Numbered from the stretch's first letter, positions 25,445 through 60,549 are shown. The stretch: 64,000 bases of DNA from Macrostomum hystrix (GCA_950097015.1 CATNEN010000025.1:4340001-4404000); one strand, 5' to 3'. Made by a program: numbers and translations. Notes: generated by a model from the letters alone, not told the origin.

Positions 25445-26059
25445 CGAACAAAATTTCTTGTTTGAATTCCGCGCGAAGATCTCTCACAGAGTCCGTCAGG
25501 TAGAGCAGGAACCGATCGGCATAGTCGACTCCACTTCTGAAAGTTGTCGTCCGGTACCTGTTGTAGATGAGAACTGGTGCCGAGCCCTTCCAGCCCTCGT
25601 TGGCCCAGCTGCAAACATCGCGTCTGTCGGAAATCACCCAGAAGCCACGGTCATTGTCGCATCCGCCTCCAGAGAACGCTACGAAAAAGCCCCGCTTCTG
25701 ATTCGGGTCCCCGTCAATTGTGAAATGGCTGAAGCGCTGCTTTGCCTCGATGCGGAACGGGTAGGATGACACAAGTCGAGAGTGCGAGAACCAGTTCTTC
25801 AGGGTGATCTCGTCAGTGTTGTCGGACAGATCAAACACCATCTGTGCAACCACCTGGTCGTTCTTGATCATCTCGCCGACCATCTTTGTCTTTCCTGTCT
25901 TCTTCACAGTGAGAGCGAGTTGATCGAGCAGGTCCGATCTGTAGACACGAGGCAGAGATCCGTCAGCGGGCGCTTTGTAGTTCTGTTGGAAGGAGTACGT
26001 CTGCACCGCCTCGGTCTGGATGTTCGAAGTGATCGTGAACAGCACCTGCTTGTTGCCGT
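25445..26059 (-). CDS. Modular secreted protein, left copy, module 10 (E-type)
   Basis: 615-nt phase 1-1 exon; tttcag acceptor, gtaag donor. Confidence 0.88.
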
Positions 26060-26192
26060 CTGAAAATTAACATTTTTGTTGTTGACGTTGAATGTAGGTA
26101 CAATTTAAACATGAAATCCATTCGCTTGTGGCAATTTAAAAGCATAATGGGTAATCGTTCTGGTGCAATAAACGCGTTGCTGTAAATCCTAC

Positions 26193-26804
26193 CAACAATG
26201 AGCGGCCTCTTGAACTCCTCTCTGAGATCGGGCATCTCCTTGGCCAGGTAGATAATGAGTCTGTCGGCGTACCCCGCCGCCTCGTGGAAAGGTCGACCTT
26301 GCTCTCGGTTGTAAATCAGAATCGGAGCAGTTCCTCGCCACCCTCGAGTGACCCAGTCGCAATGACCGTGAGCATCTGACACCATGATGAAGCCAGTCTC
26401 TCTCTCGCATCCACCGTACCGATTGTTGATGAAGAACCTTCGCTTCGAACCGACCTCGCCATCGAGAGAGAAAAAGTTAAACTCACTCCGATCCACTGAG
26501 TACGGATACGTCGACTCAAGTCTTTGTCTAGTAAACCAGTTCTCCATAGTGAGCTTTTCAGTGTCTGTGGACACATCGAACACGATTTGCGACACGACCT
26601 GATTATCTTTGCGCATTTCTACGACAATGTTTTTTGCAGCAGATTTTTTAACTGTCTGAGACAGCTTGTCCAAAAGATCGGATCTGTAGACTGGAGGCAG
26701 AGATCCATCGGCAGGCATTTTGAAGTGTTGCTGATGCTTGTATGTTTCTAGGGCTTCCATGCGTACGTTCGGAACAATGGTGAACAGCAGCTGCTTTCCT
26801 TTCT
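26193..26804 (-). CDS. Modular secreted protein, left copy, module 9 (X-type)
   Basis: 612-nt phase 1-1 exon; ccttag acceptor, gtagg donor. Confidence 0.88.
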
Positions 26805-26921
26805 CTAAGGAAAATTGGGGAAAGAATTTAAACTAATAATGCCTTTAAACGATTAATCCACAGGTTACAACTGTCTCCTTAAAATCAGTTTGCTAGGAAT
26901 CCAGGCAATTTTCTTTCTTAA

Positions 26922-27556
26922 CAGCAAGCCAACTTAACTTAACTTAACTTAACTTTCTTAACAGCAAGCCATTTTGCCGCCCATTTGTATATCAAGGTAT
27001 TTAAACGATGTCCCCTGAAAAATTAGTTTGGAAGCACCCGATTGCTAACATCATTGGGTGGTGACTGACTAGTAGCCATATTAGGCGAGGGTGTACTGTG
27101 GTTGTGCTGCGGCAAATATTTTGGCTTGATCAATGAAATTGGGGAAATTAGGTCCTTCGGGTGGTCCATAGTGGCCTAGTTTTACCCTTTGTAGCCCTTC
27201 AAAGTCCAGCAAAACCGTCTAGGTAAAGGTAGGTGACCACCAAAGACGAAGATTAAGCAGGCACATTCGGGTGGCATGCTATAAGTTTGAAGGACTGGCA
27301 AGGCCGCACTAAGGCGCAATGCTAATTCGTGTATATGGGTGTATGAAATACGCTAGCGCATAGTGGGAAAAATCTGGCATTCTGCCAGAACCGTTGAATA
27401 TCTCGACGGTCTTAAGAGCTGGCAACTTGATTCTTGTTCGTGAAGATGCGCAACAAAAATTTGGCGCATGTTCTCGAGTTTTGTGTGCTTTCGATGCTCT
27501 GCTCAGATGCTTCAAAAAATTGTCGAAGGGGAAATCCCCCCTTGGTATTTCTACTG
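26922..27556. mobile_element. Copy-specific 635-bp insertion flanked by TTAA
   Basis: TTAA at 26918-26921 and 27557-27560; absent from the matching intron of the right copy (959 vs 323 nt). Termini only weakly inverted (CAGCAA / CTACTG). Confidence 0.5.
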
Positions 27557-27763
27557 TTAAGGCACCCTAATAGCCTCTCATGGGTGTTGAACATGGGCAG
27601 AGTTTGTGAATTTTTGCCTCGGGGAAACCGAAATAGAAGTCCAATCAGTACCCCTTGAAGTTGTTAAGCTCTCGATTGTAAACTTACTTTCTTATGCTTC
27701 ACTTTTCACAAATACAAAGTCAGAAATTAGCATGGTAATCAACAGACGGGAAAGCGTCCTCAC

Positions 27764-28375
27764 CGAAAAATACTTCCTTCTGAAAGTCGGAGCGAAGATC
27801 CGGCACCTCCTTGGCCAGGTAGATAATGAGTCTGTTGGCGTATCCAGCAGTCTCCTGGAACGGTCTTCCCGGCCTGCTGCTGTAAATCAGAGTCGGAGTA
27901 GAACCTCGCCACCCTCGAGTGACCCAATCGCAATGACCGTGAGCATCTGACACCATGATGAAGCCAGTCTCTCTCTCGCATCCACCGTACCGATTGTTGA
28001 TGAAGAACCTTCGCTTCACTCCAACCTCGCCATCGAGAGAGAAAAAGTTGAACTCACTCCGATCAACTGAGTACGGATACGTAGACTCGAGTCTGTCTTT
28101 GGAAAACCAGTTCAGACTGCTCAGCTCGTCTGTGTCGGTGGACACATCAAACACGACCTGTGAGACGACCTGATTGTCTTTGCGCATCTCGACGACCATT
28201 TTTCTCCTTCCTGACTCCCTCACAGCCCGCGGCAGCTCGTCCATCAGATCGGATCTGTAGACTGGAGGCAGAGATCCGTCAGCCGGCATCTTGAAGTTTT
28301 GTTGATGTTTGAGTGTCTCCAGCGCTTCCATGTGCACGTTCGGAACAATGGTGAACAACAGCTGCTTGTCTTTTT
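27764..28375 (-). CDS. Modular secreted protein, left copy, module 8 (X-type)
   Basis: 612-nt phase 1-1 exon. Confidence 0.88.
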
Positions 28376-28605
28376 CTGGAAACCAAGCGGAAAGCTACGA
28401 GCTATTAACAAGTATTCTCCCTTATCAAATTCAAATAAGAATTTTATTAGCCAATAAATGATTAAAATATCTTTAAAACAAGCGTGGCGATTCCCAAAAA
28501 GATTCAGACAAATAATTATTTAGGGCGTGACTCTTCTAGAACCAATCGTTTCATGCACACATACTCTATTCCCATTTAGGCACTACGCTCGTAAACAAAA
28601 CTTAC

Positions 28606-29220
28606 CGAACAAAATTTCTTGTTTGAATTCCGCGCGAAGATCTCTCACAGAGTCCGTCAGGTAGAGCAGGAACCGATCGGCATAGTCGACTCCACTTCTG
28701 AAAGTTGTCGTCCGGTACCTGTTGTAGATGAGAGCTGGTGCCGAGCCCTTCCAGCCCTCGTTGGCCCAGCTGCAAACATCGCGTCTGTCGGAAATCACCC
28801 AGAAGCCACGGTCATTGTCGCATCCGCCTCCAGAGAACGCTACGAAAAAGCCCCTCTTCTGATTCGGGTCCCCGTCAATTGTGAAATGGCTGAAGCGCTG
28901 CTTTGCCTCGATGCGGAACGGGTAGGATGACACAAGTCGAGAGTGCGAGAACCAGTTCTTCAGGGTGATCTCGTCGGTGTTGTCGGACAGATCAAACACC
29001 ATCTGTGCAACCACCTGGTCGTTCTTGATCATCTCGCCGACCATCTTTGTCTTTCCTGTCTTCTTCACAGTGAGAGCGAGTTGATCGAGCAGGTCCGATC
29101 TGTAGACACGAGGCAGAGATCCGTCAGCGGGCGCTTTGTAGTTCTGTTGGAAGGAGTACGTCTGCACCGCCTCGGTCTGGATGTTCGAAGTGATCGTGAA
29201 CAGCACCTGCTTGTTACCGC
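28606..29220 (-). CDS. Modular secreted protein, left copy, module 7 (E-type)
   Basis: 615-nt phase 1-1 exon. Confidence 0.88.
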
Positions 29221-29878
29221 CTGAAAATAAATAATGTGTTTTTGCATATAAATATACTTCATGCTTCGACTCGTGGACAAAGATATTAAAGCTCGTTTAG
29301 GAGTAGAGACTTTCTGCTAAATCAAGCGGTACTGTTTGACGAAATTGGTTACAGTTTTTCGTGACACTTCCCATTCACGAGTTCATATCTCTGAAAAGGA
29401 GGATAGGGTAGAAATGGTATTTTTTACTATACAAATCGATGCTTTCGGTAGTCAGCTTGATTCGGAAGCCAGCCACGTTCAAGTTTGCACTCCTGCCGTC
29501 GTTCACAATGTTGCCGAAGCTATTGAAGCGGCGCTTGGAGCCCTTCAGACCAGCGCGACGGCGGTTCCGGTGGCGGGTTGCGTCTGCATAAGTGACACGT
29601 CGATAGACCAGTGTTCTTCCTCACACCCGACTTTGCAATCGCTTCACCGTCAGGGGCTGAGAAATCCGGATGTATGTTGAGCTTATTCTCGACTCCGCTA
29701 ATCCTCAACCTGGGTCACGGCAAGTGTCTTTCAACGTCTTGCTCAATTTTTCGGTGCATCCCGGACGCGGAGCGGAAATGATCATCCGCAACGTATATAT
29801 TATAGACCCAGCAACAAAGTCAATACTTCACAAGCCTGCACATCACAAAAATTCCCTATCCTCTTCCACAGCGCTTAC

Positions 29879-30490
29879 CCACAATGAGCGGCCTCTTGAA
29901 CTCCTCTCTGAGATCGGGTACATCCTTGGACAGGTAGATAATGAGTCTGTCGGCGTACCCCGCCGCCTCGTGGAAAGATCGACCTTGCTCTCGACTGTAA
30001 ATCAGAGTCGGAGCAGATCCTCGCCACCCTCGAGTGACCCAGTCGCAATGACCGTGAGCATCTGACACCATGATGAAGCCAGTCTCTCTCTCGCATCCAC
30101 CGTACCGATTGTTGATGAAGAACCTTCGCTTCGAACCAACCTCGCCATCGAGCGAGAAAAAGTTGAACTCACTCCGATCAACTGAGTACGGGTATGTTGA
30201 CTCAAGTCTTTGTTTAGAAAACCAGTTCTCCTTAGTGAGTTTTTCAGTGTCTGTGGACACATCAAACACGACCTGCGACACAACCTGATTGTCTTTGCGC
30301 ATCTCGACGACCATTTTTCTCGTTCCTGACTCCCTCACAGCCCGTGGCAGCTCGTCTACCAGATCGGATCTGTAAACTGCAGGCAGAGATCCGTCAGCCG
30401 GCATCTTGAAGTTTTGTTGATACTCGAATGTCTCCAGGGCTTCCAAGTGTACGTTCGGAACAATGGTGAACAGCAGCTGCTTGTCTTTTT
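29879..30490 (-). CDS. Modular secreted protein, left copy, module 6 (X-type)
   Basis: 612-nt phase 1-1 exon. Confidence 0.88.
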
Positions 30491-30640
30491 CTGAAAAGCA
30501 AGGGAGATACAAAAAACTAAGCTTATCTTGAATCCACAAGTCACTTCTGTAAAAAGTGACCTTAGAAAACTTGTATTATTAAACATACGAGCTAGTTTCC
30601 TGCTCATTGTTTTAAAAAAACTTTTTTTGTTTTCGCTCAC

Positions 30641-31255
30641 CAAATATAATTGGTTTCTTAAACTCTGGGCGCAGGTCCTTTACATTATCTGTCAGGTAGA
30701 GCAGGAACCGATCGGCATAGTCGACTCCACTTCTGAAAGTTGTCGTCCGGTACCTGTTGTAGATGAGAACTGGTGCCGAGCCCTTCCAGCCCTCGTTGGC
30801 CCAGCTGCAAACATCGCGTCTGTCGGAAATCACCCAGAAGCCACGGTCATTGTCGCATCCGCCTCCAGAGAACGCTACGAAAAAGCCCCGCTTCTGATTC
30901 GGGTCCCCGTCAATTGTGAAATGGCTGAAGCGCTGCTTTGCCTCGATGCGGAACGGGTAGGATGACACAAGTCGAGAGTGCGAGAACCAGTTCTTCAGGG
31001 TGATCTCGTCGGTGTTGTCGGACAGATCGAACACCAACTGTGCAACCACCTTGTCGTTCTTGATCATCTCGCCGACCATCTTTGTCTTTCCTGTCTTCTT
31101 CACAGTGAGAGCGAGTTGATCGAGCAGGTCCGATCTGTAGACACGAGGCAGAGATCCGTCAGCGGGCGCTTTGTAGTTCTGTTGGAAGGAGTACGTCTGC
31201 AACGCCTCGGTCTGGATGTTCGAAGTGATCGTGAACAGCACCTGCTTGTTGCCGT
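30641..31255 (-). CDS. Modular secreted protein, left copy, module 5 (E-type)
   Basis: 615-nt phase 1-1 exon. Confidence 0.88.
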
Positions 31256-31388
31256 CTGAAAATTAACATTTTTGTTGTTGACGTTGAATGTAGGTACAAT
31301 TTAAACATGAAATCCATTCGCTTGTGGCAATTTAAAAGCATAATGGGTAATCGTTCTGGTGCAATAAACGCGTTGCTGTAAATCCTAC

Positions 31389-32000
31389 CAACAATGAGCG
31401 GCCTCTTGAACTCCTCTCTGAGATCGGGCATCTCTTTGGCCAGGTATATAATGAGTCTGTCGGCGTACCCCGCCGCCTCGTGGAAAGATCGACCTTGCTC
31501 TCGACTGTAAATCAGAGTCGGAGCAGATCCTCGCCACCCTCGAGTGACCCAGTCGCAATGACCGTGAGCATCTGACACCATGATGAATCCAGTCTCTCTC
31601 TCGCATCCACCGTACCGATTGTTGATGAAGAACCTTCGCTTCGAACCGACCTCGCCATCGAGAGAGAAAAAGTTAAACTCACTCCGATCCACTGAGTACG
31701 GATATGTCGACTCGAGTCTTTGTCTAGTAAACCAGTTCTCCATAGTGAGCTTTTCAGTGTCTGTGGACACATCGAACACGACTTGCGACACGACCTGATT
31801 ATCTTTGCGCATTTCTACGACAATGTTCTTCTTTCCTGACTGCTTCACAGCCCATGGTAGTTCGTCCAGCAAGTCAGATCTGTAGACTGGAGGCAAAGAC
31901 CCATCAGCCGGCATCTTGAAGTTCTGCTGGTGCTCGAAGGTGTCATGGGCCTCCATGTGTACGTTCGGAACAATGGTGAACAGCAGCTGCTTGTCCTTCT
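31389..32000 (-). CDS. Modular secreted protein, left copy, module 4 (X-type)
   Basis: 612-nt phase 1-1 exon. Confidence 0.88.
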
Positions 32001-32104
32001 CTGCAATTTGATTCGATTTGTTTTTACGTAATATTTTTTACCTTTCGCTCAGAATATATTTTTGTGCGTTAGATTATTCATGGCATAGCATTTTTTGAAC
32101 TTAC

Positions 32105-32719
32105 CGAATTCAATCGGCTTCTTGAACTCCTTTCGCAGGACATCAACAGTATTGGTGAGGTAGATTACAAAACGGTCTGCGTAGTCCACACCACTCCGGA
32201 ACGTCGTTGTGCGATACCTATTGTAGAGGAGCACTGGAGCGGCGCCCAGCCAGCCCTCAGAGCCCCAGCTGCATTGATCTTTCTTGTCAGACACGAGCCA
32301 GAATCCCAGGTCATTGTCGCAGCCCTTTCCCGTGTCCGTTACTGCGAAGTTTCTGCTCATCGATTTGTCACCGTCGATGCTAAAGTAGTTGAGATGAACC
32401 TTTTTAGAAATCTGGTATGGGTAGGCTGACTCTAGTCTGTCCCTAGAGAACCAGTTCGTCAGGGTTAGCGAGTCTGTGTCGGTTGAAACGTCAAACACTA
32501 GTCGGGCGACAACATCATTGTCTTTGCGCATTTCGGCGATCATCTTTTTCCTTCCCGAGCGCTCAACAGTCTTAGCCAGCTGGTCCAGCAGATCCGAGCG
32601 GTAGATGAGCGGCAGCGATCTATCATCTGGGATCGGGTAGTCTTGCTGGTGCTTGAACGTGTCTAGAGCCTCCTTTCCGACTCTTGACGTGATCGTGAAC
32701 AATATTTGCTTATCATCAT
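32105..32719 (-). CDS. Modular secreted protein, left copy, module 3 (E-like)
   Basis: 615-nt phase 1-1 exon. Confidence 0.88.
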
Positions 32720-32790
32720 CTGAAATGTAGTTTAAGTTGCAGAAATCTCCAATTGTTTCTGAATGCAAACACAGGATTTTAATAACGCAC

Positions 32791-33402
32791 CGACAACAAA
32801 CGGCCGCTTGTAGTCCCATCGCCTGTCCTCTACTTCGTGCGTGAGGTACACCAGCATGCGGTCGGCCGAATCTACTCCCTGGTGGAAGGGCCGGCTCTGA
32901 AGCCGGTTGTACAGCAGCAGCGGAGGTGAGCCCCGCCAGTAGCGCCTAGCCCAGTCGCAGGTGTCGTGAGAGTCAGAGATGGCGATGAAGCCCGCATCGT
33001 TCTCGCAGCCTCCGTAGTTGTAACTGATGTAGAAGCGACGCTGCACCGTCTTGTCCCCTTCTAGCGAGAAGAAGTTAAACTTGCTCTTGTCTATTAGGTA
33101 GGGGTATGAGGACTCCAGGCGGTCGGTTGAGAACCAGTTCTCAATGTTTAGACTGTCCGTGTTCTTGCTCACATTGAAGACCACTTGTGCCACCACAGAA
33201 TCAGCTTTGACCAGCTCCACCACCATCTGCGTCATGCCCGAGTCCTTTACAGTCCGCGGCAGATCGTCCAGCAGGTCCGATCGGTAAAGCACTGGCAGCT
33301 TGTCATCGATTGGAGATCTATAGTTCTGCTGCTCGGTGAAAGTCTCAAGAACGCTCTTGTGGATGTTGGCCTTGATCGTGTACAGAAGCTGCTTTCTTTC
33401 GG
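32791..33402 (-). CDS. Modular secreted protein, left copy, module 2 (X-like)
   Basis: 612-nt phase 1-1 exon. Confidence 0.88.
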
Positions 33403-33533
33403 CTGCAAGGGAATGAGTCAATGCGTGACTTCGAAATGCATGATGTAAAATGAATATTTTAAGGCTGATATTTCATATGCGATCTGTGCTCGAAAGAGGT
33501 AACTTAAAAGGTAACCAGTAATGAAAATAGCAC

Positions 33534-34157
33534 CATGGAAAAAGGGCGTCCTGAACTCGGCTCGAAACTCGTCCACTGTGTCTGTGAGGTACACGAGGAA
33601 CTGGTCCGCAAACGCGGCGCCCTGCTGCATGGTGCGGTCCTTGAATCGGTTGTAGACAAGCACTGGAGCCAGGCCCTTCCAGGCTTTATGGGCCCAGCCG
33701 CAGGGGTCCCTAGCGCCGGACAGGAACCAGAAGCCGCGGTCGCGTTCGCAGCCCTCGTTGCTGATTGCGATTAAAAAGCTGCGCGATAAACTCGCGTCGC
33801 CTTTGACGGAGAATTTGAAAAACTTTGCCGCGTCTTCGAGCTTATAGGGCCAGGCGCCAACTAGGCGAGACGGCGAGAACCAGTTAAACTGATCGACAGT
33901 GTCCGTGTAGTCGCCGATGTCGAAAACGACGCGCATCACGGCGGCTCTATCGACGCGCATCTCGGCCACAATGTTTTTTTTGCCAAGTCGACGAACGGCG
34001 CCAGGCAAGTCGTCGAGAAGGTCGGACCGGTACACCGCCGGTAGCGGCTCATTCGGCGACGGGGCCGGTCGGTTTCCGTTGCCCCTGGTGATGAACGCCT
34101 TCTGCGGGTCCTCGCCGATGTTGCTACGGATGGTGAAGAGTAGCGTCTTGTCGTCCT
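33534..34157 (-). CDS. Modular secreted protein, left copy, module 1
   Basis: 624-nt phase 1-1 exon beginning (x)DDKTLLFTIRSNIGEDPQKAF; the acceptor catgcag has a weak pyrimidine tract. Confidence 0.82.
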
Positions 34158-35254
34158 CTGCATGGTTGGTGCAAGGTTCGATTGAGATGTCATTCAGCGA
34201 ACAATAAACCTATAGCTCTCTGGTGTGATTAGAAATTGATGATATCATTTTTGCCATAGAACCCACTTCACTGTTGCAAGTCGCTGAACTCTCCGACGCT
34301 TAACTAAAGGACGCTTCATTCTCGACTACTTTAGTTCATACATTTTCAAATTTGATGATTTTGGTGGGTGTGGCGCCCCCCCCCCTTGTCCATGGACCGA
34401 GCAGCCTTTGGATGCGCCACGCAAGAGTAACTCAATGTGCTCAATAGAGTCAACCATAAAGAGAATGGTTGATGTATCATTTCTGCCATATAAAATTGAA
34501 CCACTGACATTATGGACCGAAATTGAACTTTATACCTTAATTATATTTCATATATTTTAGTACAACCAATCTTAACAAGAGGAGAGTGACACCAAAAAAA
34601 TGTCTAGTAAATTTTTGGAAATAAGCCCGCCTTATCTTTCACTTTAAATGAAAATATTGCTAGCATTTTACTGACGTTTCTAACAATTTCTGGTTGCTAA
34701 AGCAGTATTTTTAAGTCATGAAAGTCTCAAGTGAGGAATTGAAGGCCGCCAACTTCTCACCCTGCAGGGTTAGAGCATAGATAAGCTGAGTAGCAAGACG
34801 AGCGAAACATGTTTTTAACCATGGCAACGCATTTTGTGTCAAGAATTTTGTGTCGCCAAAATGTTTGAGCGCAAAAACAGATTAAATTCGTTTTAGGAGC
34901 GTCTTTTCGATTAATCATCTCTAGTGCTTAAAGTCAATGCCGACGATAAGATCAACAGGTACCTTTTTGTTCTGATTTAGCTATAGTCAATGTATAAGAA
35001 TTTTTTGTGTGGCCGTTTCATTCTTTGAAATGGCCACATGCTTGAATTGCCATTAATCGTAACCATTAATCAGATTGCGTCACTCAGAAGCGATAAGTGT
35101 TGAAAACAGCCTTTTCAGTTATTGACTTGCCGGTGGACAGGGCTTTTTAGGCTGACCACTGTAACGAAACTTTTTTCAGCTTCTATCTTGACTCTAAACT
35201 ACTCGTAGATTGGGTTTAAAGATACTATTCATGGGTGCAATAAATGCACAATGA

Positions 35255-35380
35255 AGGGATTGTAGTAATCACTTGAGGGTCGGGGGTTCGACTCTTGATT
35301 CCACTAGAACGATTTGAGTCACTGAGCTCTTACGAGCGTAAATTGGTATTAACTCCCCCAGTCCATGGACTGAACAGCCG
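35255..35380 (+). mobile_element. tRNA-derived SINE, family B (internally deleted copy)
   Basis: ggttcgactcttgattcc head and cccagtccatggactgaacag end shared with the copies at 46462 and 51150. Confidence 0.55.
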
Positions 35381-35570
35381 TACGCAGCCTTCAAATGCGC
35401 CGCGCAATAGCTGCGGCTGTGCTGTCGGCTGCACATCTGGCCCAATAGGGGCAGGTGCAAGCAGTTATTAATTTGACTTCGAGCTGCATGTATACATCTC
35501 AACGTCATCAGTCCCTATGGGCTAACCCAGCAGTGGAGCAACGATTTGTGTCCACGAAAACAGTACTCAC

Positions 35571-35667
35571 CGAACGTGAAGCCATCGGCGGATGCGACGT
35601 CAGCAGCCTGAGCAGTGGCTGCCACCCACGCGAACACAATCAGGCAGATCAGTCGTAGGCCAGCCAT
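35571..35667 (-). CDS. Modular secreted protein, left copy, exon 1 (signal peptide)
   Basis: MAGLRLICLIVFAWVAATAQAADVASADGFTF plus G|gtgagt phase-1 donor; hydrophobic core and AxA cleavage motif; same reading in the right copy. Confidence 0.85.
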
Positions 35668-36389
35668 TGTTTCTGCTGACCGCAACAAAAGTCCACTGCT
35701 AGATTTTGTAGGAAAACTTTATGGCTAAGTTATGCAGTAGATTGATCCGTACCATGTGAACAAAGCGAAGGAAATTAGAAATTACCAAAACTTTGACGAA
35801 CGCTTGCTGTCCTCAAAGTCAGCAATGACAGTCAGACAAGAGCGGCTCTCTTATCAATTAAAACTGAGACCCGAGGCGAAAGGTCTTTAGCGAATCGTTT
35901 AAATGCGCTTTGAATTAACGCTACCGGATTTTACGCAAAACGACTTAAACAAATTAAAACGTTTGCGCATGTTAAAAAATGCTGACAATAAGATGTAGCT
36001 CGTAGCACTGTTATTCTTTTAACTTATCGAGAAGAATATGTTTGTTGATAAATTTAACACATCGATAGAAAATCAAGGTTAAAATTTTCAAATTCTCTGA
36101 GCGTTATTGCTTTTATGGATGAAATGTTCGTCTCGATACTACTATTAGCACTAGTATGGTGATTTGCACGAGCGCATTTGCGCTTACATTTAAGGCATCG
36201 CTAATAAATTCTTCTTAAAGACAAGTAACTTGCTAGTGTTTTTGATATAAGAGATTGTGAACAAAATAAACGCGGCACAATAGGTCCCTGGAATGTCGTC
36301 TGGTACGGTCAGTACCTGGATCACACAATGGAGATCGAGGACATGGGTCATTGTACAGCGCAGCAGATCCCGCTGTGGTCTTCTCTCCG

Positions 36390-36912
36390 CGTCATTCCTC
36401 GGGATCAGGCACGATGTGCGAATGGTCCATGAAATGGTCAAGAATGCGGTTCATGACGCCAGTGACCTCGGCCGCAACACAACGACCGTCAGGGCCAAGA
36501 ACCTTACCGCTCGGTGCTCTCCAAGCGAACAGCATGACCTTTTCATTGGGCTGGTGCGAAAGTCCTCAGCTGGAAAAGCTGGCGTGTCCGTTAGTTGCGT
36601 GAAGCTTGCAATCAACGGCGCCGATGGTGCATTCGCGGGTCTTCAAGTCGGGGCCAGCTGCAGTGATGGACTGGCGGGCGTCCTCGACGGCAACGCGCTG
36701 ACGCTCATCCAAGAGACGCGCAATGCCTTCTTCGCGTCACCGTGGGCCTTAATCGTCTTTGGAGCCGCTCGATGTTCCGCCGTGCTTGCTTGATTGTCGG
36801 GTTGCTCTGAAAGACTGGCAGCGATCGCTCCGCCGGCAGAATCAGCGGGACCGCCTTTGTCTGCATGAGCTCTTAAGACACTGCTGATGTCAGCGTACTC
36901 AGCAGTTCTGAT
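36390..36912 (-). pseudogene. GC-rich coding-like island, possibly a disrupted exon of an unidentified gene
   Basis: Acceptor ctcgtag|ATC opens IRTAEYADISSVLRAH... to a TGA at 36643. An overlapping frame reads GIARLLDERQRVAVEDARQ...*...MNRILDHFMDHSHIVPDPEE* with one internal TGA. No family recognised. Confidence 0.3.
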
Positions 36913-36924
36913 CTACGAGTGCAA

Positions 36925-37110
36925 AGACACATCCCACAATCCCGAATCCCTCATAGACACACCCCACAATCCCGAATCCCTCATAGACACATCCCACAAT
37001 CCCGAATCCCTCACAGACACATCCCACAATCCCGAATCCCTCATAGACACACCCCACAATCCCGAATCCCTCACAGACACATCTCACAATCCCGAATCCT
37101 TCAAAGACAC
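36925..37110. repeat. 30-bp minisatellite (GACACATCCCACAATCCCGAATCCCTCATA)n
   Basis: About 6 units read directly. Confidence 0.9.
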
Positions 37111-39696: not shown

Positions 39697-39728
39697 GTGA
39701 GTTCTAGATCTAAAATACATACTGAAAA

Positions 39729-50097: not shown

Positions 50098-50857
50098 GAT
50101 CATTCATAGGAAGCAGATACAAGGCTCTTCTTTTGATATAACTCACAAAATATGTTGCTTCGATGAATTTTATAAAGATTTATTCATGAATAATTGATCT
50201 TCATACTATTTTAGTTTCTGTATCATGCAGCAATTATAGTCTGAAGCTAACTAGTGACTAACTTGAATTCTAGAATCTTTGTTTAATCGAATACATAGAT
50301 ATTTATTAGCAATTAATTATTAGCAATATCATTAAAAATAGTTGGCTATGATTGTATGCCCAACTCACTGCTATATCATCGATGTCATCTTCTAGTGGTC
50401 CTTGGCTAGAACGCTCAGAGAATTTGAAAATATTTTACCTTGATTTTTCATCGATGTGCATGTTAAATTTATTCATGAAAATATTCTTTTCGATAAGTTA
50501 AAAGAATAACAGTGCTACGAGCTACATCTTATTGTCAGCATTTTTTAACATTCGCAAACATTATAATTTGTTTTAAGTCGTTTTGCGTAAAATCCGGTAG
50601 CGTCAATTCAAAGCGCATTTAAACGATTCGCTAAAGACCTTTCGCCTCGGGTCTCAGTTTTAATTGATAAGAGAGCCGCTCTTGTCTGACTCTGTCATTG
50701 CTGACTTTGAGGACAGCAAGCGTTCGTCAAAGTTTTGGTAATTTCTAATTTCCTTCGCTTTGTTCACATGGTACGGATCAATCTACTGCATAACAATTAG
50801 CCATAAAGTTTTCCTACAAAATCTAGCAGTGGACTTTTGTTGCGGTCAGCAGAAACA

Positions 50858-50954
50858 ATGGCTGGCCTACGACTGATCTGCCTGATTGTGTTCGCGTGGG
50901 TGGCAGCCACTGCTCAGGCTGCTGACGTCGCATCCGCCGATGGCTTCACGTTCG
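50858..50954 (+). CDS. Modular secreted protein, right copy, exon 1 (signal peptide)
   Basis: MAGLRLICLIVFAWVAATAQAADVASADGFTF plus G|gtgagt. Confidence 0.85.
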
Positions 50955-51149
50955 GTGAGTACTGTTTTCGTGGACACAAATCGTTGCTCCACTGCTGGGT
51001 TAGCCCATAGGGACTGATGACGTTGAGATGTATACATGCAGCTCGAAGTCAAATTAATAACTGCTTGCACCTGCCCCTATCGGGCCAGATGTGCAGCCGA
51101 CAGCACAGCCGCAGCTATTGCGCGGCGCATCTGAAGGCTGCGTACGGCT

Positions 51150-51345
51150 GTTCAGTCCATGGACTGGGGGACACCACACCACCCTCAATTACCCCAGCTG
51201 ATGCTGGTTACCCATTTAACAGCTGCGTGAACTGAATCAATGCAAAGTAAAGTGTCTTGCTGAATGGCACAAACTGCTCCACTGGAATCAAGAGTCGAAC
51301 CTCCGATCCCTCAAGTCATTAGTCCGCATGGCTACACCCCTTCGT
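51150..51345 (-). mobile_element. tRNA-derived SINE, family B, in intron 1 of the right copy
   Basis: Reverse strand: tRNA-like head, then agcaagacactttac...cagctgttaaatgggtaaccagcatc body, ending ccccagtccatggactgaacag. Confidence 0.65.
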
Positions 51346-52452
51346 TGTGCGTTAATTTCGATATACTGATAGCGTTAATTTAGCATTAGTATTGGCAATC
51401 TATAAACATAATCTAGTTTGAAGACTAGAGAAAAGCTGCAAAAATGTAATCAAAGGAGGTCAATTAGTCTCGCCAACGTCTAGCACTACAGTTAATCAAT
51501 AACTGATAAAAACCGTTTTTTAACACTTATCGCTTCTGGGTGACGATAAAGGTTAGGATTAGAAAAATGCAAGCGAATGACCAGAGAGGTTTCTAAGAAT
51601 GAAACGGCCACACAATAAATTCCTATACTTTAACTAGTTAAAGCAGAATAACAAAATGCCGTCAGTCGTCTTATCGTCAGTATTGATTTCCAGCATTAGA
51701 GACTAGTAATCGATAAGACGCTCCTAAAACGCAATTTAATCTGTGGGTTTTCACTCCACGTTTTGGCGCCCAAAAATTCTTGACGCAAGGTGCGTTGCCA
51801 TGGTTGCAAAAATGTTTTGCTCGTCTTGCTACTCAGCTTATCTATTCTCTCACCCAGAGTGAGAAGTTAGCGGCCTTCAATTGCTTAACTGAAATTTTCG
51901 TGACACAAAATCTGCTTTAGCAACCAGAATTTATTGGCCTCTTAGAAAAGTCAGTAAAATGCGAATAAAAGATTATTTGAACTGACAGACAAGGTCTATT
52001 AGCAAAAATGTGATAGAAATTTACCTTGGCGGCACTCTCGCTTTGATAAGATTAGTTCTACAGTAGTTAAATCCACATACATAGTTCAGTTTCGCTCCAT
52101 AATGTGGATGGTTAAATTTAAGCAGAAATGGTTAATTGATTTAGGCAGAAATGACTCCTCAACAAGTGTGTCTCAATGTACAGCCAAGAGACGCAGCGGC
52201 ATCTATTGTCTATGGGCTAGGGTGGGGAGGCGCGACACCCACTGAAATTTTTACTTCCCATTTTACAGCTGAATAATCTGAAGTAGTCGAGAATGAATCG
52301 TCCTTTAGTTAAGCGTCGGAGAGTTCAGCGACTTTCAACACTGAAGTGGGTTCTATGGCAAAAATGATATCATCAATTTCTAATCACACCAGGGAGCTAG
52401 ATTTATTTTTCGCTGAATGACATCTCAATCGAACCTTGCACCAACCATGCAG

Positions 52453-53076
52453 AGGACGACAAGACGCTACTCTTCACCATCCGTAGCAACATCGGCGAGG
52501 ACCCGCAGAAGGCGTTCATCACCAGGGGCAACGGAAACCGACCGGCCCCGTCGCCGAATGAGCCGCTACCGGCGGTGTACCGGTCCGACCTTCTCGACGA
52601 CTTGGCTGGCGCCGTTCGTCGACTTGGCAAAAAAAACATTGTGGCCGAGATGCGCGTCGATAGAGCCGCCGTGATGCGCGTCGTTTTCGACATCGGCGAC
52701 TACACGGACACTGTCGATCAGTTTAACTGGTTCTCGCCGTCTCGCCTAGTTGGCGCCTGGCCCTATAAGCTCGAAGACGCGGCAAAGTTTTTCAAATTCT
52801 CCGTCAAAGGCGACGTGAGTTTATCGCGCAGCTTTTTAATCGCAATCAGCAACGAGGGCTGCGAACGCGACCGCGGCTTCTGGTTCCTGTCCGGCGCTAG
52901 GGACCCCTGCGGCTGGGGCCATAAAGCCTGGAAGGGCCTGGCTCCAGTGCTTGTCTACAACCGATTCAAGGACCGCACCATGCAGCAGGGCGCCGCGTTT
53001 GCGGACCAGTTCCTCGTGTACCTCACAGACACAGTGGACGAGTTTCGAGCCGAGTTCAGGACGCCCTTTTTCCATG
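52453..53076 (+). CDS. Modular secreted protein, right copy, module 1
   Basis: 624-nt phase 1-1 exon. Confidence 0.82.
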
Positions 53077-53207
53077 GTGCCATTTTCATTACTGGTTACC
53101 TTTTAAGTTACCACTTTCGAGTACAGATCGCATATGAAATATCAGCCTTAAAATATTCATTTTACATAATGCATTTCGAAGTCACGCATTGAATCATTCC
53201 ATTGCAG

Positions 53208-53819
53208 CCGAAAGAAAGCAGCTTCTGTACACGATCAAGGCCAACATCCACAAGAGCGTTCTTGAGACTTTCACCGAGCAGCAGAACTATAGATCTCCAA
53301 TCGATGACAAGCTGCCAGTGCTTTACCGATCGGACCTGCTGGACGATCTGCCGCGGACTGTAAAGGACTCGGGCATGACGCAGATGGTGGTGGAGCTGGT
53401 CAAAGCTGATTCTGTGGTGGCACAAGTGGTCTTCAATGTGAGCAAGAACACGGACAGTCTAAACATTGAGAACTGGTTCTCAACCGACCGCCTGGAGTCC
53501 TCATACCCCTACCTAATAGACAAGAGCAAGTTTAACTTCTTCTCGCTAGAAGGGGACAAGACGGTGCAGCGTCGCTTCTACATCAGTTACAACTACGGAG
53601 GCTGCGAGAACGATGCGGGCTTCATCGCCATCTCTGACTCTCACGACACCTGCGACTGGGCTAGGCGCTACTGGCGGGGCTCACCTCCGCTGCTGCTGTA
53701 CAACCGGCTTCAGAGCCGGCCCTTCCACCAGGGAGTAGATTCGGCCGACCGCATGCTGGTGTACCTCACGCACGAAGTAGAGGACAGGCGATGGGACTAC
53801 AAGCGGCCGTTTGTTGTCG
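53208..53819 (+). CDS. Modular secreted protein, right copy, module 2
   Basis: 612-nt phase 1-1 exon. Confidence 0.88.
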
Positions 53820-53890
53820 GTGCGTTATTAAAATCCTGTGTTTGCATTCAGAAACAATTGGAGATTTCTGCAACTTAAACTACATTTCAG

Positions 53891-54505
53891 ATGATGATAA
53901 GCAAATATTGTTCACGATCACGTCAAGAGTCGGAAAGGAGGCTCTAGACACGTTCAAGCACCAGCAAGACTACCCGATCCCAGATGATAGATCGCTGCCG
54001 CTCATCTACCGCTCGGATCTGCTGGACCAGCTGGCTAAGACCGTTGAGCGCTCGGGAAGGAAAAAGATGATCGCCGAAATGCGCAAAGACAATGATGTTG
54101 TCGCCCGACTAGTGTTTGACGTTTCAACCGACACAGACTCGCTAACCCTGACGAACTGGTTCTCTAGGGACAGACTGGAGTCAGCCTACCCATACCAGAT
54201 TTCTAAAAAGGTTCATCTCAACTACTTTAGCATCGACGGTGACAAATCGATGAGCAGAAACTTCGCAGTAACGGACACGGGAAAGGGCTGCGACAATGAC
54301 CTGGGATTCTGGCTCGTGTCTGACAAGAAAGATCAATGCAGCTGGGGCTCTGAGGGCTGGCTGGGCGCCGCTCCAGTGCTTCTCTACAATAGGTATCGCA
54401 CAACGACGTTCCGGAGTGGTGTGGACTACGCAGACCGTTTTACAATCTACCTCACCAATACTGTTGATGTCCTGCGAAAGGAGTTCAAGAAGCCGATTGA
54501 ATTCG
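53891..54505 (+). CDS. Modular secreted protein, right copy, module 3
   Basis: 615-nt phase 1-1 exon. Confidence 0.88.
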
Positions 54506-54609
54506 GTAAGTTCAAAAAATCCTATGCCACACATAATCTAACGCACAAAAACATATTCTGAGCGAAAGGTAAAAAATATTACGTAAAAACAAATCGAATC
54601 AAATTGCAG

Positions 54610-55221
54610 AGAGGGACAAGCAGCTGCTGTTCACTATTGTTCCGAACGTACACATGGAGGCCCATGACACCTTCGAGCACCAGCAGAACTTCAAGATGCC
54701 AGCTGATGGGTCTTTGCCTCCAGTCTACAGATCTGACTTGCTGGACGAACTACCATGGGCTGTGAAGCAGTCAGGAAAGAAGAACATTGTCGTAGAAATG
54801 CGCAAAGATAATCAGGTCGTGTCGCAAGTCGTGTTCGATGTGTCCACAGACACTGAAAAGCTCACTAAGGAGAACTGGTTTTCTAGACAAAGACTCGAGT
54901 CGACATATCCGTACTCAGTGGATCGGAGTGAGTTCAACTTCTTCTCCATTGACGGAGATGTCGGAGCGAAACGAAGGTTCTTCATCAGCCATCGGTATCC
55001 CGGATGTGAGAAAGACGCTGGCTTCATTGTGGTGGCTGATGCCAAAGACGGTTGCAACTGGATCAGTCGAGGCTGGCAAGGATCTGCTCCGATTCTGATT
55101 TACAACCGAGAGCAAGGTCGACCTTTCCATGAGACCGCTGGTTACGCTGACAGACTCATTATCTACCTGGCCAAGGAGATGCCCGATCTCAGAGAGGAGT
55201 TCAAGAGGCCGCTCATTGTTG
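54610..55221 (+). CDS. Modular secreted protein, right copy, module 4 (X-type, SHRYPGC cassette)
   Basis: 612-nt phase 1-1 exon. Confidence 0.88.
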
Positions 55222-55353
55222 GTAAGATTTAAAGTGAGACGTTTATTGCACCAGAACCATTACCAATTATGCTTTTAAATTGGCAAAAGCGAAGTAATTC
55301 CGTGTTAAATTGTACCTACATTCAACGTCAACAACAAAAATGATAATTTTCAG

Positions 55354-55970
55354 ACGGCAACAAGCAGGTGCTGTTCACGATCACTTCGAACATCCAGACC
55401 GAGGCGGTGCAGACATTCTACTCACCACAGAACTACAAAGCACCCGCTGACGGATCTCTGCCTCGTGTCTACAGATCGGACCTGCTCGATCAACTCGCTC
55501 TCACTGTGAAGAAGACAGGAAAGACAAAGATGGTCGGCGAGATGATTCAAGAACGACCAGGTGGTTGCACAGATGGTGTTCGATCTGTCCGACAACACCG
55601 ACGAGATCACCCTGAAGAACTGGTTCTCGCACTCTCGACTTGTGTCATCCTACCCGTTCCGCATCGAGGCAAAGCAGCGCTTTGACCATTTCACAATTGA
55701 CGGGGACCCGAATCAGAAGAGGGGCTTTTTCGTAGCGTTCTCTGGAGGCGGATGCGACAATGACCGTGGCTTCTGGATGATTTCCTGACAGACGCGATGC
55801 TTGCAGCTGGGCCAACGAGGGCTGGAAGGGCTCGGCTCCAGTTCTTATCTATAACAGGTACAGGACGACAACATTCAGAAGTGGAGTCGACTATGCCGAT
55901 CGGTTCCTGCTCTACCTGACAGATAATGTAAAGGACCTGCGCCCAGAGTTTAAGAAACCAATTATATTTG
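55354..55970 (+). CDS. Modular secreted protein, right copy, module 5 (E-type) with two +1 insertions as assembled
   Basis: 617 nt vs 615 expected; extra T at ~55546 and ~55786 relative to sister modules. Confidence 0.7.
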
Positions 55971-56121
55971 GTGAGCGAAAACAAAAAAACGTTTTTTTAA
56001 AACAATGAGCAGGAAACTAGCTCGTATGTTTAATAATACAAGTTTTCTAAGGTCACTTTTTACAGAAGTGACTTGTGAATTCAAGATAAGCTTAGTTTTT
56101 TGTATCTCCCTTGCTTTTCAG

Positions 56122-56733
56122 AAAAAGACAAGCAGCTGCTGTTCACCATTGTTCCGAACGTACACTTGGAAGCCCTGGAGACATTCGAGTATCAACAAAA
56201 CTTCAAGATGCCGGCTGACGGATCTCTGCCTGCAGTTTACAGATCCGATCTGGTGGACGAGCTGCCACGGGCTGTGAGGGAGTCAGGAACGAGAAAAATG
56301 GTCGTCGAGATGCGCAAAGACAATCAGGTTGTGTCGCAGGTCGTGTTTGATGTGTCCACAGACACTGAAAAACTCACTAAGGAGAACTGGTTTTCTAAAC
56401 AAAGACTTGAGTCAACATACCCGTACTCAGTTGATCGGAGTGAGTTCAACTTTTTCTCGCTCGATGGCGAGGTTGGTTCGAAGCGAAGGTTCTTCATCAA
56501 CAATCGGTACGGTGGATGCGAGAGAGAGACTGGCTTCATCATGGTGTCAGATGCTCACGGTCATTGCGACTGGGTCACTCGAGGGTGGCGAGGATCTGCT
56601 CCGACTCTGATTTACAGTCGAGAGCAAGGTCGATCTTTTCACGAGGCGGCGGGGTACGCCGACAGACTCATTATCTACCTGGCCAAGGATGTACCCGATC
56701 TCAGAGAGGAGTTCAAGAGGCCGCTCTTTGTGG
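56122..56733 (+). CDS. Modular secreted protein, right copy, module 6 (X-type)
   Basis: 612-nt phase 1-1 exon. Confidence 0.88.
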
Positions 56734-57374
56734 GTAAGCGCTGTGGAAGAGGATAGGGAATTTTTGGATGTGCAGGCTTGTAAAGTATTGACTTTGTTGC
56801 TGGGTCTATTATATATACGTTGCGGATGCTCAGTTCCGCTCCGCGTCCGGGATGCACCGAAAAATTGAGCAAGACGTTGAAAGACACTTGCCGTGACCCA
56901 GGTTGAGGATTAGCGGAGTCGAGAATAAGCTCAACGTACAGATTTCTCAGCCCCTGACTGTGAAGCTATTGCAAAGTCGGGTGTGAGGAAGCACACTGGT
57001 CTATCGACGTGTCACTTAAGCAGACGCAACCCGCCACCTGAACCGCCGTCGCGCTGGTCTTAAGGGCTTTAAGCGCCGCTTCAATAGCTTCGGCAACATT
57101 GTGAGCGACAGCAGGAGTGCAAACTTACCGTGGCTGGCTTCCGAATCAAGCTGACTACCGAAAGCATCGATTCCAGACGCTAAAAACCGTATCTTTAATC
57201 TATCAACTCTTTACAGAGATTTGATCTTATGAATGCCTGTCAAAAAACTCTAGTCAATTACGTCAAGCAGTGCCGGTTTATGCAGCATAAAGTATTTAAT
57301 CCTAAACGAGCTTTAATATCTTTGACCACGAGTGGAAGCATGAATTATAACAAAAAAACTTTATTTACTTTCAG

Positions 57375-57990
57375 ATGGCAACAAGCAGGTGCTGTTCACG
57401 ATCACTTCGAACATCCAGACCGAGGCGGTGCAGACGTACTCCTTCCAACAGAACTACAAAGCGCCCGCTGACGGATCTCTGCCTCGTGTCTACAGATCGG
57501 ACCTGCTCGATCAACTCGCTCTCACTGTGAAGAAGACAGGGAAAGACAAAGATGGTCGGCGAGATGATCAAGAACGACCAGGTGGTTGCACAGATGGTGT
57601 TCGATCTGTCCGACAACACCGACGAGATCACCCTGAAGAACTGGTTCTCGCACTCTCGACTTGTGTCATCCTACCCGTTCCGGATTGATCCGCAGCAGCG
57701 ATTCCACCAATTCAGCATTGATGGAGATGCCGCGAGGAAGCGGGGCTTCTTCGTGCTGTTCCCGGATAATGGCTGCGATAACGACCGGGGCTTTTGGATG
57801 ATCGCTGATAGGCGGGATGACTGCAGCTGGGCCAACGAGGGCTGGAAGGGCTCGGCTCCAGTTCTTATCTACAACAGGTACCGGACGACAACGTTCAGAA
57901 GTGGAGTCGACTATGCCGATCGGTTCCTGCTCTACCTGACGGACTCTGTTAAAGATCTTCGTTCAGAGTTTAAACAAAAAATAATGTTTG
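57375..57990 (+). CDS. Modular secreted protein, right copy, module 7 (E-type) with one +1 insertion as assembled
   Basis: 616 nt vs 615 expected; extra G in the G-run at ~57541. Confidence 0.7.
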
Positions 57991-58254
57991 GTAAGTTCTT
58001 TCCAGAAATTTTGTTTCGCGCAAAATGTAAATACGCTCGCAGCTTGTGTTGTGCTTTAAACTATTTTTTCTATTACTCGCACCCAAAAGAATTTATACTC
58101 TTAATTTTAGCCTAAATGTTTTATGAGCATCGCAACGCTTTATTAAAAGATGCTATTAAGATTTCTTTTAAGTCACGTCTTATTATATTTCTTATTTGAA
58201 TTTGATAAGGGAGAATACTTGCCAGTCGCTCGTAGCTTTCCGCTTGGTTTCCAG

Positions 58255-58866
58255 AAAAAGACAAGCAGCTGTTGTTCACCATTGTTCCGAACGTGCACAT
58301 GGAAGCGCTGGAGACACTCAAACATCAACAAAACTTCAAGATGCCGGCTGACGGATCTCTGCCTCCAGTCTACAGATCCGATCTGATGGACGAGCTGCCG
58401 CGGGCTGTGAGGGAGTCAGGAACGAGAAAAATGGTCGTCGAGATGCGCAATGACAATCAGGTCGTCTCACAGGTCGTGTTTGATGTGTCCACCGACACAG
58501 ACGAGCTGAGCAGTCTGAACTGGTTTTCCAAAGATAGACTCGAGTCTACGTATCCGTACTCAGTTGATCGGAGGGAGTTCAACTTTTTCTCTCTCGATGG
58601 CGAGGTCGGAGTGAAGCGAAGGTTCTTCATCAACAATCGGTACGGTGGATGCGAGAGAGAGACTGGCTTCATCATGGTGTCAGATGCTCACGGTCATTGC
58701 GATTGGGTCACTCGAGGGTGGCGAGGATCTGCTCCGACTCTGATTTACAGCAGCAGGCCGGGAAGACCGTTCCAGGAGACTGCTGGATACGCCGACAGAC
58801 TCATTATCTACCTGGCCAAGGAGGTGCCGGATCTTCGCTCCGACTTTCAGAATGAAGTATTTTTCG
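58255..58866 (+). CDS. Modular secreted protein, right copy, module 8 (X-type)
   Basis: 612-nt phase 1-1 exon. Confidence 0.88.
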
Positions 58867-59189
58867 GTGAGGACGCTTTTCCGTTTGTTGATTACCATGC
58901 TTATTTCTGACTTTGCCTTTGCAATTAGTATTATTCAAAGCAAAATACTTTAGTCAAAACTTAATGAAAGCCAAATGAACAGCAATTGGTGCTAATTGGG
59001 CTTTAAGTTCTGCTTCCCGACGTGAACATTCAAGAACACAGCATTTGTCAAACACTCATAAAGGCTATTTTAGTGTTTTAAGAAAGCTAACTGCCTGGAT
59101 TTCTAGCACTTTAATTCCGTGGAGACAGTTGTAACCTTAAAGAGCAAAATTAAACAAACATTTTTAATTCTTTCCCCAATTTTCCTTAG

Positions 59190-59801
59190 AGAAAGGAAAG
59201 CAGCTGCTGTTCACCATTGTTCCGAACGTACACATGGAAGCCCTGGAAACATACAAGCATCAGCAACACTTCAAAATGCCAGCCGATGGATCTCTGCCTC
59301 CAGTCTACAGATCCGATCTTTTGGACAAGCTGTCTCAGGCGGTAAAAAAATCTGCTACAAAAAACATTGTCGTAGAAATGCGCAAAGATAATCAGGTCGT
59401 GTCGCAAGTCGTGTTCGATGTGTCCACAGACACTGAAAAGCTCACTAAGGAGAACTGGTTTTCTAGACAAAGACTCGAGTCGACATATCCGTACTCAGTG
59501 GATCGGAGTGAGTTCAACTTCTTCTCCATTGACGGAGATGTCGGAGCGAAACGAAGGTTCTTCATCAGCCATCGGTATCCCGGATGTGAGAAAGACGCTG
59601 GCTTCATCGTGGTGGCTGATGCCAAAGACGGTTGCAACTGGATCAGTCGAGGCTGGCAAGGATCTGCTCCGATTCTGATTTACAACCGAGAGCAAGGCCG
59701 ACCTTTCCATGAGACCGCTGGTTACGCTGACAGACTCATTATCTACCTGGCCAAGGAGATGCCCGATCTCAGAGAGGAGTTCAAGAGGCCGCTCATTGTT
59801 G
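59190..59801 (+). CDS. Modular secreted protein, right copy, module 9 (X-type, SHRYPGC cassette)
   Basis: 612-nt phase 1-1 exon. Confidence 0.88.
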
Positions 59802-59934
59802 GTAAGATTTACAGCAACGCGTTTATTGCACCAGAACCATTACCAATTATGCTTTTAAATTGCCAAAAGCGAAGTAATTCCGTGTTTAAATTGTACCTAC
59901 ATTCAACGTCAACAACAAAAATGTTAATTTTCAG

Positions 59935-60549
59935 ACGGCAACAAGCAGGTGCTGTTCACGATCACTTCGAACATCCAGACCGAGGCGGTGCAGACATTCT
60001 ACTCACCACAGAACTACAAAGCACCCGCTGACGGATCTCTGCCTCGTGTCTACAGATCGGACCTGCTCGATCAACTCGCTCTCACTGTGAAGAAGACGGG
60101 AAAGACAAAGATGGTCGGCGAGATGATCAAGAACGACCAGGTGGTTGCACAGATGGTGTTCGATCTGTCCGACAACACCGACGAGATCACCCTGAAGAAC
60201 TGGTTCTCGCACTCTCGACTTGTGTCATCCTACCCGTTCCGGATTGATCCGCAGCAGCGATTCCACCAATTCAGCATTGATGGAGATGCCGAGAGGAAGC
60301 GGGGCTTCTTCGTGCTGTTCCCGGAAAATGGCTGCGATAACGACCGGGGCTTTTGGATGATCGCTGATAGGCGGGATGACTGCAGCTGGGCCAACGAGGG
60401 CTGGAAGGGCTCGGCTCCAGTTCTTATCTACAACAGGTACAGGACGACAACATTCAGAAGTGGGGTCGACTATGCCGATCGGTTCCTGCTTTACCTGACG
60501 GACTCGGTAAAGGATTTACGCGTGGAGTTTAATCAAAGGATTATTATCG
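59935..60549 (+). CDS. Modular secreted protein, right copy, module 10 (E-type), GC donor
   Basis: Exactly 615 nt if the donor is G|GCAAGT at 60550. Confidence 0.85.

Follow-up and report, generated by a model that had tools for sequence, protein, structure and literature searches.

Mosaic module exons in two inverted copies of a 12-module secreted-protein gene of Macrostomum hystrix, with probable patchy gene conversion

Results

Mosaic module exons in two inverted gene copies

The window analyzed here is a stretch of 64,000 nucleotides (nt) from Macrostomum hystrix (GCA_950097015.1, CATNEN010000025.1:4340001-4404000), and all positions are counted from its first letter. This eukaryotic DNA contains an inverted duplication of ~12.3 kb, with arms at 23754-36105 and 50410-62081, each of which carries 12 collinear copies of a coding unit of ~600 nt in one order. 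The two genes thus arranged lie head-to-head, the left on the minus strand and the right on the plus strand, and are copies of one gene for a secreted 12-module protein. Their module exons, designated M1 to M12 with the prefix L or R for the left or right gene, are mosaics of segments with conflicting relationships. As assembled, the mosaic is genuine and far from random, and it is in all likelihood the product of ordinary ectopic gene conversion, that is, patchy concerted evolution, acting independently in the two inverted gene copies.

A first-pass annotation of this DNA had proposed that the N-halves of the modules track position in the array while the C-halves track gene copy. Its count of 24 modules is correct (12 were found per arm), the peptide strings that it quoted are all present where it put them, and the N-halves of M4 and M9 are indeed positional, with L4 pairing with R4 and L9 with R9 both in the site counts and in the N-segment tree. 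In a sliding nearest-neighbor scan, L4 and R4 are mutually closest within exon nt 1-200; downstream of nt 200, R4 shares 98-100% identity with R9 and the nearest relatives of L4 are L9 and M6, with L9 and R9 showing the symmetrical switch. Within the quartet L4/R4/L9/R9, exon nt 5-173 harbor 37 sites that unite positional partners and 0 that unite modules of the same gene, while nt 259-539 harbor 44 same-gene sites and 0 positional ones. The perfect separation of these 37 + 44 sites, none of them interleaved, has a chance probability of about 1e-22.9. Separate trees of the two halves, for which discordance had been predicted, are discordant with high support. The maximum-likelihood tree of the N-segment recovers (L4,R4) at 97/99 and (L9,R9) at 100/99; that of the C-segment recovers (R4,R9) at 100/99 and places L4 and L9 with M6, and approximately unbiased (AU) tests reject the opposite groupings with p values from 1e-29 to 1e-104.

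The B-type modules (5, 7, and 10) are mosaic too: R7 equals R10 over nt ~90-507, and L5, L7, and L10 are alike over nt 250-500, with the last ~55 nt of the B-type modules remaining positional. A further mosaic, not listed previously, lies in the first ~130 nt of L11, which equal those of L8/R8 and follow an intron that is also L8-like. As a general rule, the proposal that C-halves follow gene copy fails. The "left" A cassette (FINNRYGGCERET...) is present in left M4, M6, M8, and M9, as claimed, but is not left-only, since right M6 and M8 carry it as well; likewise, the "left" B cassette (IEAKQRF...) is found in left M5, M7, and M10 but also in right M5, with 95-98% nt identity to L5/L7/L10. 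Moreover, M1-M3, M6, M8, the C-half of M11, and M12 are plainly positional (98.5-100% between the arms). These positional modules, together with the "left" cassettes of right M5, M6, and M8, limit the gene-copy rule to M4, M9, M7, and M10.

Exchanged tracts and their ends

The exchanged tracts were mapped by 100-nt window scans along both arms, introns included, and by block alignments. They are as follows, with exon coordinates in nt and partner tracts in succession.

54783-55442, plus strand: right tract 1a, R4 from nt 174, intron 4, and into R5 to nt ~89 (site and window scans)
59363-60023, plus strand: right tract 1b, partner of 1a, R9 from nt 174, intron 9, and into R10 to nt ~89
30696-31827, minus strand: left tract 2a, L4 from nt 174, intron 4, and L5 to nt ~560
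25500-26631, minus strand: left tract 2b, partner of 2a, L9 from nt 174, intron 9, and L10 to nt ~560
28231-29215, minus strand: left tract 3a, all of exon L7, intron 7 (225 nt), and L8 up to nt ~145
25070-26054, minus strand: left tract 3b, copy of 3a, L10, intron 10, and the first ~145 nt of L11
57464-57882, plus strand: right tract 4a, R7 nt ~90-507, the "right" B cassette
60024-60441, plus strand: right tract 4b, partner of 4a, R10 nt ~90-507

These stretches ignore the exon borders and the segment between the two conserved Cys residues and pass through introns into the next exon. Tracts 1a and 1b show 2 differences in 449 exon nt; the left breakpoint of 1a falls between 54782 and 54868 and its right end between 55442 and 55517. 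Tracts 2a and 2b are 98.7% identical, and 2a is itself composite, with L4 nt ~400-500 being 99-100% M6-type. Tracts 3a and 3b differ at 5 of 985 nt. In the left gene, intron 10 measures 225 nt versus only 77 nt in the right, which argues that the 77-nt intron itself was replaced by the 225-nt one in the left gene. Tract 4a differs from R10 at 3 positions, one of which is a 1-nt insertion at about 57538. Near-identity in the tract interiors covers synonymous sites as well as whole introns, with a synonymous divergence (dS) of about 0-0.03. The tract ends sit in the most conserved stretches, which are identical across several modules (exon nt ~174-258 in A-type modules and nt ~90-250 in B-type modules), and it is for this reason that the mosaics look like "N-half versus C-half."

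Gene structure, transcripts, and assembly indels

Each gene consists of one signal-peptide exon followed by 12 one-exon modules of ~205 residues each. Module exons were located by tblastn and splice-site reading and the signal peptide by its open reading frame (ORF), and the exons were analyzed singly, without a joined protein model. Every module exon is preceded by ...cag and ends in a G followed by gtaag or gtgag; all introns are therefore phase 1, with one module per exon. The upstream signal-peptide exon, conserved in both arms, ends in phase 1 too, and module 12 reads into a stop codon; it is these features that identify the two genes as head-to-head copies of a secreted-protein gene. The exons of the two genes are listed below; L1 to L12 rest on tblastn and splice sites.

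23945-35667, minus strand: left gene copy (tblastn, splice sites, signal-peptide ORF)
35571-35667, minus strand: left exon 1, signal peptide (signal-peptide ORF)
33534-34157, minus strand: L1
32791-33402, minus strand: L2
32105-32719, minus strand: L3
31389-32000, minus strand: L4
30641-31255, minus strand: L5
29879-30490, minus strand: L6
28606-29220, minus strand: L7
27764-28375, minus strand: L8
26193-26804, minus strand: L9
25445-26059, minus strand: L10
24603-25214, minus strand: L11
23945-24510, minus strand: L12, stop included
50858-61901, plus strand: right gene copy (tblastn, splice sites; some joints in RNA contigs)
50858-50954, plus strand: right exon 1, signal peptide
52453-53076, plus strand: R1
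53208-53819, plus strand: R2
53891-54505, plus strand: R3
54610-55221, plus strand: R4
55354-55970, plus strand: R5
56122-56733, plus strand: R6
57375-57990, plus strand: R7
58255-58866, plus strand: R8
59190-59801, plus strand: R9
59935-60549, plus strand: R10, apparent GC-AG donor
60632-61243, plus strand: R11
61336-61901, plus strand: R12

At 60549-60556, the R10 exon reads ...ATCG followed by GCAAGT, where L10 has G followed by GTAAG; R10 thus appears to use a GC-AG intron.

Contigs from four public runs (Logan) were aligned to 54500-56300. Spliced contigs are present in three of the four runs, with GT..AG joints in RNA contigs at 55220/1 to 55353/4 and 55969/70 to 56121/2 and also between R3 and R4 and between R8 and R9, which confirms the exon model and transcription. 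Among the contigs are left-type ones, with L4 and L5 letters at every variant site, and others with the right-type cassette. R5 (55546 and 55786) and R7 (~57538) are frameshifted in the assembly by 1-nt insertions. Both R5 insertions are missing in all four runs, including an RNA contig that is otherwise exact for the R4 C-half and R5, and are most likely residual indel errors of a polished long-read assembly. Right M5 is therefore ruled out as a pseudo-exon.

Old cassettes under constraint

For the distance calculations, the codons hit by the three 1-nt insertions (two in R5, one in R7) were masked (N/X). The synonymous and nonsynonymous (dN) divergences and their ratio (omega, dN/dS) for the loop segment (residues 96-150), with the arms as reference, are as follows.

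L4 versus R4, loop segment: dS 0.75, dN 0.17, omega 0.23
L9 versus R9, loop segment: dS 0.61, omega 0.29
L10 versus R10, loop segment: dS about 2, omega 0.09
Untouched arm segments: dS 0.05-0.10

The cassette types differ at dS 0.6-2, with an omega in the loop segment of 0.09-0.29 (pairwise only). The check on the loop that the first-pass annotation had suggested, site-wise dN/dS, was thus carried through as pairwise omega, and this measure gives no excess in the exchanged segment; when old module pairs are compared, the loop segment shows no higher dN than the remainder of the module. In a tree built with M. lignano modules included, M1, M2, M3, and M12 have one-to-one orthologues, and the C-halves of R4/R9 branch outside all other A-type C-halves of both species. 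By these distances and this topology, the alternative cassettes are ancient and under purifying selection, and the high dS together with the outgroup position of the R4/R9 C-half marks the "right-only" cassettes as old lineages rather than products of rapid diversification. These lineages would have persisted in the right gene and been replaced in its left counterpart, where a single B cassette remains and the R4-type A cassette is missing, so that variants were lost, not gained, and the net effect of the exchanges is homogenization. The best protein matches are multi-module proteins of M. lignano, at most 89% identical. The M. lignano orthologue (P0151, P0152, P0002) is itself a multi-module array in which several modules have identical N-halves or identical C-halves, so that patchy homogenization operates there too.

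Genome-wide searches covered 220,453,370 bases in 42 contigs and returned no further module copies at more than about 70% nt identity; all similar DNA lies within the window. The possibility that the "right-only" cassettes came from a donor at some other genomic site was considered and rejected, as there is none at the DNA level and other loci of the family are far more diverged. More multi-module loci of this family lie on five other contigs, C7 (8139432-8143421), C3, C9, C29, and C39.

A candidate domain family

Neither the modules nor 50 family members have a Pfam match. A profile search of 1.84 billion representatives retrieved 528 proteins at E<=1e-3, among them amphioxus proteins with EGF, fn3, and ZP domains, SVEP1-like proteins with Sushi repeats, and others with TSP1 or PAN; this co-occurrence identifies the module as a metazoan extracellular domain. 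AlphaFold, given a 50-sequence alignment, confidently predicts a beta-rich model (pLDDT 93, pTM 0.88). At least 90% of members retain two cysteines, Cys 127 and Cys 143 in module numbering, and the segment between them is modeled as a core strand with a short variable tip. Foldseek gave no match in the PDB at E<=0.001, and a sequence profile search of the PDB returned nothing meaningful. An exhaustive structural search with VIA-align gave no more than twilight-level matches, TLDc scoring Z 4.7-5.1 and, in effect level with it, fibrinogen, intelectin, and ficolin scoring Z 3.7-4.4 over 120-155 residues at a root-mean-square deviation of about 4-4.8 A; Z below 8 is common by chance. Neighbors in the ESM-Atlas are mollusc and cnidarian clusters, some of them auto-named fibrinogen C-terminal.

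In the model, the module resembles two possible structural relatives, the fibrinogen-related domain (FReD, PF00147) and TLDc, in being predicted beta-rich, in its length of ~200 residues, and in one disulfide-closed segment near the C-terminal half. In contrast to a true fibrinogen-related domain, it has no match in Pfam, among PDB sequences, or by Foldseek. Membership in the FReD family was rejected: hhalign against this genome's own FReDs gives a probability of 0.4%, and none of the 50 members has a Pfam match. Genome-wide, fibrinogen-type (PF00147) exons number at least 74. The module is thus a candidate new domain family, lacking a Pfam model or a clear solved fold, and one may reasonably guess at a lectin-like or recognition role.

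Layout of the locus

The spacer between the inverted arms (36106-50409, no strand) is 14.3 kb of unique, non-palindromic sequence composed mostly of satellite arrays; because it is not palindromic, a fold-back or palindrome artifact is ruled out. The satellites span 36925-50099 and include an 18-nt unit repeated 121 times at 42737-44919 and a 36-nt unit repeated 58 times at 47990-50099. Two arrays of a 16-nt satellite unit, at 39728-40171 and 40842-41408, run in opposite directions, and a related array is located at ~7095-7540. The long ORFs listed in the spacer are artifacts of the satellite repeats.

Identity from arm to arm is very uneven, reaching 100% in exon M2 and intron 2 and ~99% in M5-intron 5-M6 and falling to 89.6% in intron 6, 84% in the region upstream of M1, and 78% in one block. 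The pattern suggests that the duplication is older and that the arms still convert each other, that the exons are under purifying selection, or both. Intron 8 measures 954 nt in the left gene (26805-27763) versus 318 nt in the right (58867-59189); the surplus of ~640 nt, perhaps an insertion, matches nothing else in the window.

Discussion

Ectopic conversion between module exons

The observations are well accommodated by a simple sequence of events, in which the inverted segmental duplication of a 12-module secreted-protein gene would have come first. As direct repeats, the module exons lie 0.75-5 kb from one another and share 75-90% identity, some stretches being the same in several modules, and such close and similar repeats are expected to pair ectopically in DNA repair or meiosis. 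Pairing would then lead to non-reciprocal gene conversion, with double unequal exchange giving the same outcome, and each arm would have gathered its own set of 0.4-1.1 kb tracts after the duplication. In the right gene, M4 would have been homogenized with M9 and M7 with M10. In the left gene, an M6-type C-half would have overwritten M4 and M9, an M5-type loop would have overwritten M7 and M10, and the block of M7, intron 7, and the head of M8 would have overwritten M10, intron 10, and the head of M11. Segmental gene conversion, as the first-pass annotation had already suggested, is favored by the sharp breakpoints, by near-identity at synonymous sites and across whole introns, by the module number and order kept in both arms, and by the availability of all donors in cis. 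We infer the recombination mechanism and the direction of each event from these patterns, as we do a process that is neutral or mildly homogenizing rather than selected.

The locus shares with ectopic gene conversion and concerted evolution the sharp near-identical tracts inside old diverged copies, the discordance of trees along the sequence, the inclusion of introns, the constancy of copy number, and a mainly homogenizing effect that nonetheless makes new mosaics. Reported precedents include mammalian gene pairs (PMC2720389), Caenorhabditis paralogues (PMC3966223), and mosaic tandem paralogues (bioRxiv 10.1101/2025.10.29.685298). Unlike the usual case, exchange at this locus is between the 12 module exons within a gene, and it occurred independently in two inverted copies; the gene family, unlike those of the known cases, is undescribed.

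Several points weigh against ectopic conversion as we describe it. Linkage across each breakpoint rests on one canu/Arrow/Pilon assembly, which carries demonstrable 1-nt indel errors at this very locus. The short-read-derived contigs of the public runs end at 54783-54812, within 86 nt common to all four modules L4/R4/L9/R9, and therefore leave the junction, and with it the linkage of the N-half and C-half of R4, unphased. The direction of events rests on similarity and on the M. lignano outgroup, itself homogenized, and a pairwise omega below 1 is compatible with a few positively selected sites.

Alternative explanations

The first-pass annotation had gone on to suggest that conversion rewrites a probable binding loop and so provides combinatorial diversification of a multivalent protein. 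Put more fully, selection would favor conversions that reshuffle the ligand-binding half, with combinatorial diversity between the paralogues and perhaps between individuals. The encoded protein is secreted and multivalent, the two genes end with different module sets, and the exchanged segments include the disulfide-bounded segment and its variable tip, which has indels across the wider family. Contigs of other runs also differ beside the breakpoint (54868, 54872, and 54882), which could mean polymorphic tract ends. We nevertheless consider this explanation improbable. The tracts extend beyond the Cys-Cys segment and beyond exons, taking in introns, entire modules, and the conserved N-part of the exon that follows; the Cys-Cys segment taken as a binding loop is mostly a core beta-strand in the predicted model. 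The cassettes are old and constrained (dS and omega above), in old pairs their loop segment has diverged no further than the remaining module, variants were lost from the left gene in what was net homogenization, and every module is an expressed exon, which leaves no silent donor.

Snail FREPs, sea-urchin Sp185/333, and lamprey VLR assembly are recognition families that use recombination. Among the 24 modules, we found neither silent donors nor exchange limited to a variable segment, which would mark a system akin to VLR, VSG, immunoglobulin conversion, or FREPs. The polymorphic mucins of Schistosoma mansoni are reported as an antigen family that uses recombination (PMC2576457). Families of this sort share with the locus secreted repetitive proteins, recombining tandem exons, and mosaic "element patterns." Unlike such diversifying invertebrate families, the present genes show, in the assembly and the public contigs, no sign of hypervariability, of positive selection by pairwise omega, of silent donor cassettes, of somatic change, or of many expressed variants, and their cassettes are old and conserved. 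It is improbable that these are multivalent lectin-like recognition proteins in which selection keeps a small library of old C-half cassettes and conversion deals them out per paralogue. If true, this would constitute a germline, population-level combinatorial repertoire built from exons of an undescribed metazoan domain, possibly varying by lineage or individual.

More doubtful still is an assembly artifact, in which the mosaics or the whole second arm would stem from read correction, consensus, or polishing, or from a retained haplotig. The M. hystrix SR1 assembly was made with canu on PacBio reads, polished with Arrow and Pilon, and treated with Purge Haplotigs, and its authors mention assembled haplotypes (PMC10468722); the breakpoints lie inside stretches common to several modules, where a consensus could switch copies, and two R5 insertions are absent from all four public runs. 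Against this, the exchanged segments differ from the alternative by 13-16% over 300-450 nt, far beyond what polishing or consensus mixing would produce, and they contain no interleaved sites. Independent studies yield both cassette types in their DNA and RNA contigs. The arms sit 4.3 Mb into the contig, parted by the unique spacer, and differ in intron lengths (954 versus 318 nt and 225 versus 77 nt), and the sequenced line is highly inbred, with F about 0.998 (PMC10468722).

Single unequal crossovers, with block duplication or deletion such as M4-M5 re-duplicated as M9-M10 in each arm, are the least likely origin: unequal exchange is common in tandem arrays, and M4-M5 and M9-M10 are two-module units with a common intron, but a single crossover would change the module number, and both arms keep exactly 12 modules in one order, as non-reciprocal conversions or double exchanges would; moreover, the N-part of M9 is positional (L9/R9 96-98% identical) and yet lies at dS about 1.35 from M4, which makes M9 older than the arm duplication.

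Significance

Two by-products of this work are a widespread metazoan extracellular domain and a set of probable indel errors left in the repeated exons when the M. hystrix genome was assembled. Taken as patchy concerted evolution, the locus would be a very clean, exon-resolved case of this process in tandem module exons after gene duplication, in which one ancestral array was overwritten differently in two copies and the tracts end in the most conserved stretches. The "paralogue-specific loops" are old lineages still present in one copy, which counsels caution against reading such loops as fast-evolving or adaptive.

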